From assembly GCA_964106915.2 (NCBI GenBank), contig OZ066926.1: a DNA stretch of 64,000 nt; one strand, written 5' to 3'. A program made the translations under genes and the position numbers. Origin of the DNA: Podarcis gaigeae (Eukaryota). The notes beneath the pieces were generated by a model. The model saw only the letters and a list, made by a program, of their open reading frames with translations. It was not told where the DNA came from and ran no database searches. Of the stretch, positions 36,301 through 39,300 are shown piece after piece. Position 1 is the first letter of the stretch, and the number at the start of each line of letters is the position of its first letter.

Positions 36301-39300
36301 CTATGTTCTCCACCCGCCCTGCAACCAAGCCTCTGTTCTTTGCTCCATGGGGGAAATTTCCTAGCGTGTCACAGCAGTCTAGCTTTGGGACTTTGGAGGC
36401 ATGAATCCGATGGGGGCTTCCAGCTTTTACTTCTGAAGACTGTTTGGGGGCAGGTTCAAACATCCCCACCCCCCGCTGAGTGACATGCTTGGAAATGCAA
36501 CTTGTGAATGAATTGAGGTCACACCTCGTGCAGTCCTATGTTCTGATCTTCTCCTGCCCCCAGTTTTGAGCAGGAGACCTCAACCATATGGAGCCTAGAG
36601 AAGTGAAAGTTAGGACTGGAACATTGAAATCTGGTGGTTGCAGCAGCGGTGCAAAAGTGGTCCCCTGCTTTCTCACCTCACATTGCCTAATGGGGGCAGG
36701 GGATGCAAATGTAGTTTTTTAAAAGGCTAGAATTCTAGTTGATGCAGCGGGGACATAAACATCCCTTTGTCCTAATAATAGCTTATAATGGATTCTGTTT
36801 TTAAATGAAGCAGTCTTCTTAAAAGGATTGTGAAATATTTTATGTTTTTCCTCAGAGGTTGTCAATTAAAAGCCAAAACCACAGAAAGTGCATCAGTGCT
36901 TCTTCTTCTTTTTTTAATATGAATGCAATCAAAGTTAACCAGTCCCAGCGTAATCTGAGCTAAATGAGCTCTTTATCCAAGAATAGGCTTTGGTGATCTC
37001 TCAAGACAGGGCTAATCCACTGCGAGCACACACGCAAAATAGACCTGTGTGATCTTGATATGGGCCGGGAAGTAGTTTTGTAAATCGGCCCCCAAATGCA
37101 AATAATTCTGGTATGCTTTAGAGTTGATATTTGGCCCCATTCTAAAGCCTGTCAGCAACACTGAGAACCCAAGACACATGGAAGTGTGAGGGTGTGCTAC
37201 ATATGGAAATAAGATAATTAAGCTTTCATTACCCTAATGACTTAATGTTGAGGTGGAGCTGGAAAGGAGAGCCATGTAATTTCCATTGCAGACAGAATGA
37301 TGGGCTGTAAGTCAGAACTTCACTTTGACAGAGAGCCGCTATTGGCATTTAGTTTTACATGGGGTTACTATCCCAATAGGAGTATTGCAGTGCCATCAAT
37401 GTACACAATAGTTTTTCCATAGTTTCCTAAGCAAAACCGAGATACCTTAGTCAAAACAAAATAAAAAAAATTTCTTCCAGTAGCACCTTAAAGACCAACT
37501 AAGTTAGTTCTTGGTATGAGCTTTCGTGTGCATGTACACTTCAGGTATCTGAAGAAGTGTGCATGCACACGAAAGCTCATACCAAGAACTAACTTAGTTG
37601 GTCTTTAAAGTGCTACTGGAAGAAATTTTTTTTATTTTGTTTTGACTATGGCAGACCAACATGGCTACCTACCTGTAACGAGATACCTTAAACACCCTTG
37701 ATCCCTTCCTGAAGGAGCTTATCTACATCCTAGTAATTGGGGTGATAACAGAAGAACAAAAGGTTAAGGGATCAGAGTGGCATGGGCCATAGGTCCTTTG
37801 TGGGGCACATGCATTGTGTATTTAAGGTTTGAGGTTCAGTCTCTGAATTGTGTCAGAATTTCTGGTGGTTGGTGGATGGGCATGAGACTGCCTAAGGAGC
37901 TGCTGTCCTCAACATTAGAGCCCTGTCTTATATATTTGTTGGGCATTTGTGGCTCATTTTGGTAAAATACCGTATCAGGATTTAGACCCTGCACAGATAT
38001 GAAGTTGACTCCCCGTCGTTGGCGTAGCATAGGATATGCACCCTAATTCAGCAATTGAATAAAGAGATCAATTCACTGGTGTTGCTAACCTCCAGCTAGG
38101 CAGTTTCAACTACAATGTCCCCAATAGCCTTCTTGGCAGGGTCAGATTGGTTGCCAGTTGCTGACCCTACAGCTTGCAAATTCAGGCTTATAAAAGTCAG
38201 TTATAGTAAGTGTGTCTGCAAGTAAGCTGTTAAGTGCTAGTCTCTTCCTCCCCCCTTTGCTTTTTAATATACAAATGATTAGCACATGTGGGCTGGTACT
38301 CATATGGGTTTGGGGTGAGATGTTACTTCTGAAGATTATATCACCTGGCTCTTAGAATAAAGGAACTGTCGCATAATTTGAATATATAGTTTATGGAGAA
38401 GAGAGAAAAAACAGTCACAGATATTTCCAAAAGGCTCTGTTGGTCCCTTGAAAAAACAAACCCAATGTATTTATCCTTCAAAAACGGGATTACTTTTGCA
38501 GATGTGATGCTCAGAAACAATTGACACTATAAAGCAGTTGGTTTACCAATACTGCTACCAAAGGCAGTCACCCAACTGAAGAAATTTTAATTGAGTGATT
38601 GGTTAAATTGGCATAGGTGTGCATATGAGTTAAAGAAATAGTCTCAAAGAAAAAAAAGGCCTATTTCTTTTCAGCTCATTCATGCATGTTTGTTGCCTCT
38701 TCTGAGATGATGCTGGCTGCATTCCTCCTCCTACATATAGACTGTAATGCCTGTTAAGACAGCACTTGCCAGTCTGAATTTTTATAAGTAGTACTGACTT
38801 TTTTTTAGATAAAAAATTGTCCAAGTCTGTCGGGGTCATCTTTACAGTAAAATGTTTTGAAATTATCCAACCAGTAAATTGATCCAGCGAGTTAATTGAC
38901 TATAAACATTGTAACCCTGCCCAAATCAATCAGGGGCATCTTTATAGTAAAATGTTTTGAATTTATCCAACCTGTTAATTAACTATAATTGCAACCCTGC
39001 TGCCAGCTGAAGAATCTTAAGACGAAAAGAATGAAAGCTGATGGGAATGACTCTGATGAAGAGGTCCGGGGGGACGGGGACTTGTTATATTGAGAAATCC
39101 TGCCTGCCTGGGCCTGTTTCGCCTTAACTGCCTCTTGTCTTTCACCAGGTCTCGTGCACCCAGCCAGAAAGCAGCGGCAAGCCAACGGCGGAGGAGATGA
39201 CCTCCAAGGATTACTATTTTGATTCTTACGCCCACTTCGGGATCCACGAGGTGACAGAGAGTTGGCTGGGGCATGGGTTACAGAGCACCTCCTTGGCGCA

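Follow-up and report, generated by a model that had tools for sequence, protein, structure and literature searches.

A hammerhead motif in a PRMT1 intron

The window, i.e., the whole 64-kb stretch of DNA analyzed here, contains exons of PRMT1, which were placed via short peptide motifs in the six-frame translation. The alternative NES exon (33820-33873, +) has AG directly before it and GT directly after it; the coding exon downstream of it, located by its peptide motif VSCTQ..., lies at 39149-39250 (+). The intron between these exons spans 33874-39148 (+), and on its sense strand lies a hammerhead motif at 37544-37583 (+). The original prediction described this motif as a complete minimal type I hammerhead in this intron, and we confirm both the placement and the description: the letters match, and the motif is the only match to our descriptor in the window.

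Read from 5' to 3' on the plus strand, the motif begins with GGTAT (37544-37548), the 5' strand of helix I, followed by the CTGAAGA core (37549-37555), an extra bulged A (37556), and the helix II region GTGTGCATGCACAC (37557-37570). This region is a perfect 14-nt palindrome, in which the helix II strands 37557-61/37566-70 are closed by the G10.1-C11.1 pair, i.e., G37557-C37570. The 3' part of the core, GAAA (37571-37574), is followed by GCTC (37575-37578), in which U16.1 is position 37577 and C17 is position 37578, and by ATACC (37579-37583), which completes helix I (37544-48/37579-83). Based on standard hammerhead numbering, the formal predicted self-cleavage site lies 3' of C17 at 37578/37579 (+). 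The conserved core of type I hammerheads, C3 through A14 plus A15.1-U16.1 and H17, is complete. Moreover, the traits reported for minimal hammerheads (min-HHRs) of Penelope-like retroelements (PLEs) in PMC4209133 are all found here: a nucleotide bulged between positions 9 and 10.1 (A37556), a G10.1-C11.1 closing pair with an extended helix II of 5-6 bp, a short helix I of 5 bp, and a palindromic helix III/loop 3 that permits dimer formation, with helix III reduced to the A15.1-U16.1 pair within the self-complementary AGCU (37574-37577, A15.1 to U16.1). Thus, the earlier assignment to the Penelope type is borne out.

The motif-model searches proposed with the original prediction gave a divided outcome. 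Our own structure-aware descriptor (≥4 bp in helix I, CUGANGA, a bulge of 0-1 nt, ≥4 bp in helix II with a closing G10.1-C11.1 pair, GAAA, A15.1...U16.1 as a palindrome, and H17) matched exactly once on both strands of the 64 kb, at 37544-37583, and had no match in 300 dinucleotide-preserving shuffles; similarly, the 35-nt core string occurs once in the window with none expected. By contrast, the Rfam hammerhead covariance models gave no match: no Rfam family matched at gathering scores in the whole window, and no hammerhead family did so at E<=10 in the 321-nt and 60-nt stretches around the motif. The sole matches at E<=10 were microRNA-precursor models, which scored far below gathering and reflect a generic hairpin shape only. 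Folded in isolation, the 51-mer is predicted to form a helix I of 5 bp and a helix II of 5 bp with its loop, at −11.6 kcal/mol with z = −1.5. RNAcofold of two isolated monomers returned a domain-swapped dimer via the palindromic helix II rather than a kiss via helix III, a prediction that supports no conclusion because these energies do not model the tertiary fold of a ribozyme.

A fold-back insertion of a repeated family

The motif occupies the apex of an inserted segment of 229 nt (37450-37678) composed of two 3'-terminal PLE fragments arranged head to head, one with a 32-nt tail and one without. The sense fragment (37544-37678, +; 135 nt) comprises the hammerhead, a further 63 nt, and the tail (37647-37678, +). 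The tail is 59% A+C, is confined to the sense fragment, and is recognized as its 32-nt length excess over the inverted fragment, which matches the optional 3' tail of 30-40 nt that characterizes PLEs. The inverted fragment (37450-37542, −) is tailless, is the inverted repeat of 37554-37646, and is truncated at its 5' end inside the hammerhead core. The minus-strand mirror copy, which had been called probably dead, is so on our reading as well: it reads ...GAUACCUGAAGUGUACAUGCACACGAAAGCUCAUACC, lacks the 5' strand of helix I, and has a broken 5' half of the core. The two fragments meet in an 11-nt junction (37543-37553, +), which forms the apical loop and contains the 5' strand of helix I together with core positions C3-A7. 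The arms of the inverted repeat (37445-37542 and 37554-37651) are 98 nt each, 97% complementary, and spaced by 11 nt; within the element (37450-37542 versus 37554-37646), they differ at two positions, 37535 and 37487.

The insertion is bracketed by a 12-nt target-site duplication, CGAGATACCTTA, whose left (37438-37449) and right (37679-37690) copies are identical, and the outer ends of both fragments, the tailed and the tailless one, adjoin this duplication. Where the left arm ends, other copies of the family continue into the reverse complement of the tail (run X14, 37457). The inserted fragment contains no ORF and does not code for protein: every frame is interrupted by stops, and the ATG in the loop of helix II reaches a stop after nine codons.

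The element belongs to a very abundant family. Matching contigs numbered from 590 to 15,612 per run, nearly all of them on the element, and the summed contig depth climbs more than 1000-fold over 37451-37696. The family was seen in thousands of contigs in four runs, i.e., in thousands of contigs per genome, and similarity breaks at ~37545 and 37679. No second copy of the element lies elsewhere in the 64-kb window. In three related species (organisms F, G, and H), single contigs fuse 37437 directly to 37679 with nothing between and carry one copy of the duplication. This empty site, which run X15 of organism H (guessed to be RNA) carries, provides the clean counterpart that, together with the target-site duplication, typifies PLE insertions. 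Because the site is empty in these three relatives, the insertion is young, and orthologous conservation of the motif at this intronic site is absent in organisms F, G, and H. The divergence between the arms (~2%) exceeds that of the flanks from the nearest empty-site species (~1.25%), and the arms may therefore derive from two templates or have been altered by errors of the reverse transcriptase.

These data bear on the idea that the motif is a chance match in an intron or that the palindrome is false and arose in the assembly. The missing Rfam match, the isolated fold that is not significantly stable, and the lack of any one organism A contig that extends across the entire hairpin would fit such an explanation. 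However, both outer junctions of the insertion are covered by organism A contigs, the same sequence recurs in thousands of contigs in the four runs, the shuffled controls were devoid of matches, and a real insertion is identified by its duplication and tail together with the clean empty sites. We therefore consider chance or artefact to be extremely improbable.

Altogether, these findings make it very probable that 37450-37678 is a young, dead-on-arrival fold-back insertion of an abundant PLE family and that the motif was inherited with it and is caged in the resulting hairpin. The motif, the hairpin, the duplication, the tail, the empty sites, the copy number, and the intron context are all read directly from sequence. 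The element is assigned to PLEs by its motif, tail, duplication, and copy number, with no full-length RT/GIY-YIG parent seen in the window. As for the origin of the insertion, we infer priming from both strands. We suggest that the cuts made by the PLE enzyme in the two target strands were offset by 12 nt, which would generate the duplication, and that each cut strand then served as a primer for reverse transcription close to the 3' end of the PLE RNA. One strand would have started at the outer site, yielding the sense fragment with its 32-nt tail, and the other at the inner site, yielding the inverted fragment without tail. The two short cDNAs would then have been joined head to head near the 5' edge of the hammerhead. 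In this scenario, the hammerhead would be baggage inherited from the element.

The hairpin and the PRMT1 transcript

The fold-back hairpin has a minimum free energy of −161.6 kcal/mol (z = −26), and forcing the ribozyme fold within it costs about 47 kcal/mol (+46.7). The antisense arm is transcribed before the motif, and all motif nucleotides except the first 10 pair with this arm. In snapshots of the nascent chain, positions from G8 onward were always paired with the left arm, and at no nascent length was the ribozyme fold the best fold of the growing transcript. These are nearest-neighbor energies, which leave out helicases, ADAR editing, proteins, and kinetic traps. An example of the latter is the 14-nt palindrome present in each arm, which can fold into a local hairpin before the long one forms.

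The original prediction also proposed that the sense hammerhead might affect PRMT1 splicing or isoform choice, i.e., that it cuts the pre-mRNA at 37578/37579, as a monomer or a dimer, and in that way alters splicing or NES exon choice. A complete catalytic core on the sense strand of the right intron speaks for this idea; splicing can be reduced by intronic ribozymes that are fast (Fong et al. 2009, cited via PMC10919898), and a precedent is the Cpeb3 ribozyme, which is likewise intronic (PMC10919898). Several lines of evidence nevertheless argue against it. First, min-HHRs had undetectable activity as monomers and low activity as dimers (PMC4209133), and the hammerhead of the Anolis PLE is inactive without the PLE protein and becomes active once this protein is added, while Anolis RNA-seq data contain no ends at its cut site (PMC11167929). 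The view that such motifs need dimers, which the original prediction had noted, agrees with PMC4209133 and with the dimer cleavage described by Lünse, Weinberg & Breaker, as cited in PMC6765202. However, helix III is a single pair here, and neither the descriptor on both strands nor the search for element copies detected a partner on the sense strand in the 64-kb window. Second, the hairpin is favored over the ribozyme fold by the energy difference described above at all nascent lengths. Because the fold-back locks the motif in this long hairpin, an effect on PRMT1 splicing via self-cutting is unlikely. Third, splicing is disturbed only by fast intronic ribozymes (Fong et al. 2009, via PMC10919898), and the distance of 1570 nt from the cut site to the 3' splice site implies that only a fast ribozyme could compete. 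Fourth, three relatives lack the insertion, which thus shows no sign of selection. We thus regard a cut in the PRMT1 pre-mRNA that alters splicing as very unlikely, and the proposed effect on isoform choice is unsupported given the missing partner, the caging, and the absence of the insertion in relatives. Rather, by analogy with the ribozymes in PMC4209133, PMC6765202, and PMC11167929, the intrinsic activity of the motif is probably low, and on the basis of the folding models, we expect that it does not cleave at any meaningful rate in the PRMT1 pre-mRNA and that the insertion is removed together with the intron by splicing. We infer from these considerations that the insertion is inactive and neutral.

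The insertion could also act independently of catalysis, either through its double-stranded hairpin or via its splice-like strings, with ADAR editing, small-RNA production, altered splicing kinetics, or occasional exonisation as conceivable routes. The nearly perfect stem of 93-98 bp with its z score of −26 would suit the former, as would the microRNA-precursor models that score on it, although they do so well under their thresholds and by hairpin shape only. As for the latter, on our own reading, pyrimidine tracts followed by AG are present at …TTTCTTCCAG (37470-37479) and in the T-rich run to …GGCAG (37650-37654), and the splice-like string CAG|GTATCT lies at 37541-37549. Against these possibilities, all Rfam scores are far below gathering, the hairpin would also conceal the splice-like strings, and the existence of thousands of similar copies argues for tolerance of these insertions and for their being mostly neutral. 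An effect via the hairpin or the splice-like strings is thus improbable, and a young, inert fold-back insertion remains the preferred explanation.

A further scenario builds on in vitro work on Anolis, in which the PLE protein activated the hammerhead of its element in a chaperone-like manner (PMC11167929). By analogy, a PLE protein might switch on sense relics in introns, or the hairpin might feed editing or small RNAs that regulate PRMT1; we consider either highly unlikely. If true, expression of an autonomous PLE, e.g., in the germ line, would let transposon bursts cut host pre-mRNAs at thousands of relics, and the 93-98-bp hairpin would represent a lineage-specific regulator of PRMT1.

Comparison with known hammerhead-bearing elements

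The motif in the PRMT1 intron belongs to one more ordinary copy of a ribozyme-bearing retroelement of a known class and as such matters little, and a role in the choice of PRMT1 isoforms is disfavored by the evidence. It does, however, hold a caution for genome scans in that "intact" intronic minimal hammerheads in lizard, frog, and fish genomes are usually PLE debris. Before a function is proposed for such a hammerhead, it should be checked for a partner copy, a competing hairpin, and conservation.

The min-HHRs of metazoan PLEs (Cervera & De la Peña 2014, PMC4209133) share with the motif the type I topology, the CUGANGA/GAAA/UH core, the bulge between positions 9 and 10.1, the G10.1-C11.1 pair, the short helix I, and the one-pair helix III inside a palindrome. 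They are likewise massively repeated, mostly as single motifs in truncated elements. Helix II differs in that it has 7-8 bp in the Schistosoma min-HHR and 5-6 bp within a perfect 14-nt palindrome here. Pairs of PLE min-HHRs on opposite strands have been described at distances of 100-700 bp (PMC4209133), whereas the opposite-strand copies here touch and form one hairpin. The tandem second sense copy of active PLE min-HHR dimers is absent from the 64-kb window.

Self-cleaving motifs in the sense orientation of introns of protein-coding genes are also known from the amniote hammerheads HH9 and HH10 (De la Peña & García-Robles 2010, as cited in PMC10919898) and from the intronic HDV-like ribozyme of CPEB3. 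These are conserved across orders, possess tertiary contacts as well as stable helices, are recognized by Rfam models, and are active as monomers, whereas the PRMT1 motif is lineage specific, has a one-pair helix III, lacks an Rfam match, and is caged in a hairpin. A conserved functional intronic ribozyme of this kind was rejected based on the empty site in organisms F, G, and H. Non-LTR retrozymes of animals (PMC7229834; bioRxiv 10.64898/2026.07.22.740005) are likewise short and non-coding, carry type I hammerheads, and are relatives of PLE terminal repeats. However, retrozymes are direct tandem repeats able to yield circular RNA, while the units here are inverted with only one whole motif; a non-LTR retrozyme was rejected for this orientation and because one unit lacks the 5' half of the motif.

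In PLEs, the hammerhead is located in the terminal repeat just upstream of the start sites of reverse transcription. The same hammerhead architecture is found in Poseidon_Ac (PAc), a PLE of Anolis carolinensis. PAc cleaves and extends both DNA strands, and its reverse transcription begins at either of two neighboring internal sites, between which lies an optional tail of 30-40 bp (PMC11167929). Like the element described here, PAc is a lizard PLE whose hammerhead has a bulge, a long helix II, and a palindromic helix III, and whose insertions end ~70-100 nt past the cut site with an optional A+C-rich tail of 30-40 nt. The two differ in that their nucleotide sequences are unrelated and that the PAc ORF starts in helix II, while the fragment here has none. 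A comparison with the Poseidon_Ac record thus led us to reject identity with PAc, given the same architecture and no sequence similarity. The PRMT1 insertion is of modest value as a clean natural example in which a single young insertion has both ends at a 12-nt duplication, one tailed and one tailless. Nicking and extension of two strands, as in PAc, would yield exactly such a head-to-head product, which is expected if both strands prime at the pair of start sites that in vitro work on the Anolis element revealed.

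A minimal hammerhead motif in the sense strand of a PRMT1 intron

The original prediction of a minimal hammerhead ribozyme holds at the level of the motif, which was found, letter for letter, at 37544-37583 of the + strand. In standard hammerhead numbering, helix I pairs GGUAU (37544-48) with AUACC (37579-83); the core C3-A9 is CUGAAGA (37549-55), followed by a bulged A at 37556; helix II is a 14-nt palindrome, GUGUGCAUGCACAC (37557-70), with G10.1-C11.1 as closing pair; G12-A15.1 is GAAA (37571-74); and helix III is reduced to a single pair, A15.1-U16.1, within the self-complementary AGCU (37574-77). 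The formal cleavage site is predicted at 37578/37579, with C17 at 37578. Our own structure-aware descriptor, built on the structural demands of the hammerhead and run on both strands of the window, matched this motif only, and had no match in 300 dinucleotide-preserving shuffles. Moreover, the 35-nt motif string occurs once, with 0 occurrences expected. These findings rule out a chance match as the origin of the motif and, therefore, confirm the observation. The Rfam hammerhead models gave no match at gathering scores, nor at E<=10 on 321 nt or on 60 nt, which we tentatively attribute to helix III being almost absent. When two isolated monomers were folded with RNAcofold, a dimer through the helix II palindrome (37557-37570; mirror 37526-37539) was favored over one through the helix III AGCU.

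PRMT1 lies on the + strand, and its exons were located in the six-frame translation by means of short peptide motifs: a 10-residue exon motif at 30342-30371, the alternative NES exon (18 residues; AG before, GT after) at 33820-33873, and the next exon, VSCTQ..., at 39149-39250, with further exons downstream of 39250. Thus, the motif lies, as had been proposed, on the sense strand of the intron between the NES exon and the next exon (33874-39148; 5275 nt), 3670 nt from the intron start and 1570 nt upstream of the 3' splice site. Elsewhere in the window, 7139-7284 consists of 146 N (assembly gap or masked).

A young insertion of a repeated element, probably a fold-back

The motif forms the apex of an inverted repeat whose 98-nt arms (37445-37542 and 37554-37651) are 97% complementary and spaced by 11 nt. 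Outside this repeat, CGAGATACCTTA is found at 37438-37449 and again at 37679-37690; this duplication at both flanks therefore defines the inserted DNA as 37450-37678 (229 nt). The sense unit (37544-37678, +) comprises the hammerhead followed by 63 nt and then another 32 nt, while the inverted unit (37450-37542, −) equals 37554-37646 save two differences. Both units face outward, their 3' ends abutting the target-site duplication. The 32-nt tail (37647-37678, +; 59% A+C) is confined to the sense unit. Because the inner end of the inverted unit falls inside the hammerhead core, this unit lacks the 5' strand of helix I and an intact 5' half of the core, in agreement with the earlier view that the mirror copy is probably dead. 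Stop codons are present in all three sense frames of the inserted fragment. We consider it very probable that 37450-37678 is the fold-back product of one insertion event. The arms differ at two sites (37535/37561 and 37487/37609; ~2%), against a flank divergence of only ~1.25% in the closest empty-site species. Rather than reflecting divergence after insertion, these differences may stem from the use of two template RNAs or from errors of the reverse transcriptase.

Logan contigs of four runs were compared with 37000-38200. Contigs of organism A, which is probably the source species, span both outer junctions (record 1 up to 37492, record 8 from 37650). For each of organisms F, G and H, one contig (records 9, 16 and 23) joins 37000-37437 directly to 37679-38200 with no letters between, so that exactly the insertion and one duplication copy are missing, the hallmark of an empty target site. 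The flanks of these three diverge from the window by ~1.25%, 1.6% and 3.7%, respectively, as counted from the contig records. The insertion is, therefore, younger than those splits and not conserved. In run X15 of organism H, guessed to be RNA, a 1024-nt contig of the PRMT1 intron (within 37000-38151) carries the empty site, and may represent a retained intron, pre-mRNA or DNA carry-over.

Over 37451-37696, summed contig depth rises by >3 orders of magnitude, with 590 to 15,612 matching contigs per run versus single contigs on the flanks, and the similarity of other copies stops at ~37545 and 37679, with unrelated letters beyond. The element family is, therefore, hugely repeated; no second copy of the element was found inside the 64-kb window. 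At the end of the tail-less left arm, some other copies run on into the reverse complement of the tail (X14, 37457), which shows the tail to be an optional feature of the family. Numerous short contig joints (sides <30 nt) tie varied left-arm points to ~37543-37549; as a lead only, such joints may derive from further fold-backs whose inverted arms are shorter.

Cleavage and other possible effects on the host

The original prediction also held that cleavage by the sense hammerhead could alter PRMT1 splicing or isoform choice. We regard this as highly improbable. First, minimal hammerheads of Penelope-like elements (PLEs) are thought to act as dimers via helix III, monomers being inactive and dimers weakly active (PMC4209133; PMC6765202), whereas the 64-kb window holds no second sense copy. 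Second, 37430-37700 folds as one long hairpin (−161.6 kcal/mol; shuffle mean −51.3, z = −26), while the isolated motif, at −11.6 kcal/mol, is no more stable than its shuffled versions (z = −1.5). If helices I and II are imposed within the insertion and the core is kept open, the ensemble energy is predicted to rise by 46.7 kcal/mol. Third, the antisense arm is transcribed ahead of the motif, and in modeled growing chains ending at 37556 to 37600, G8 onward would always be paired with the left arm. Fourth, the hammerhead of the Anolis PLE stayed uncleaved unless PLE protein was added, and its cut site coincided with no RNA-seq read starts or ends (PMC11167929). Fifth, synthetic intronic ribozymes perturb splicing only if fast (Fong et al. 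2009, according to PMC10919898), and here the 3' splice site is only 1.57 kb past the motif. In addition, as three relatives lack the insertion, conservation offers no argument for function.

Alternatively, the intronic duplex, 93-98 bp long and near-perfect, could be a substrate for editing or dicing, or could delay splicing. Three unscored strings resemble splice sites, i.e., an acceptor-like ...TTTCTTCCAG (37470-37479), a donor-like CAG|GTATCT at the junction of the two arms (37541-37549), and a long T-rich run (37623-37654) ending like an acceptor in ...GGCAG at 37654. However, thousands of such inserts are tolerated genome-wide, which makes neutrality the default, and any measurable effect of this kind is unlikely. 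The Rfam microRNA-precursor models mir-559, MIR1222, mir-466 and mir-277 scored 39-58 bits on the hairpin 37474-37622, all far below gathering scores; we read these matches as generic long-hairpin shape only.

Relation to Penelope-like elements

The motif differs from a conserved functional intronic ribozyme in lacking conservation, a stable helix III and a model match, and the insertion differs from a retrozyme in lacking a direct tandem. By contrast, a bulged nucleotide, a G10.1-C11.1 pair, a short helix I and a palindromic helix III/loop 3, the traits that according to Cervera and De la Peña emerge in metazoan PLE minimal hammerheads (PMC4209133), are all four present in the motif. Most such hammerheads are single motifs in truncated elements, and opposite-strand pairs also occur (PMC4209133). 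The protein of Poseidon_Ac, a PLE of Anolis carolinensis, cleaves and extends both target strands, and its reverse transcription has two adjacent internal start sites, which delimit an optional A+C-rich tail of 30-40 bp, a feature found only in PLEs (PMC11167929). The end anatomy of 37450-37678 matches that of Poseidon_Ac. Together, these traits and ends bear out the predicted Penelope-type hammerhead. The ends of the insertion are unequal, with a tail on one (37647-37678) and none on the other, and look like a natural record of the start sites observed in vitro for the Anolis element.

From this end anatomy and the in vitro work on Poseidon_Ac, we infer two-strand priming, in which extension would have begun at the outer reverse-transcription start site on one target strand and at the inner site on the opposite strand. 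The insertion would then offer a clean natural example of two start sites, one per strand, in one event. The Poseidon_Ac record has the same hammerhead architecture across its unit junction but an unrelated sequence; hence, the present element belongs to a different family, which may be one undescribed in lizards. Altogether, the insertion is a new copy of a known sort, a truncated fold-back bearing a hammerhead of a known class, the PLE minimal hammerhead.
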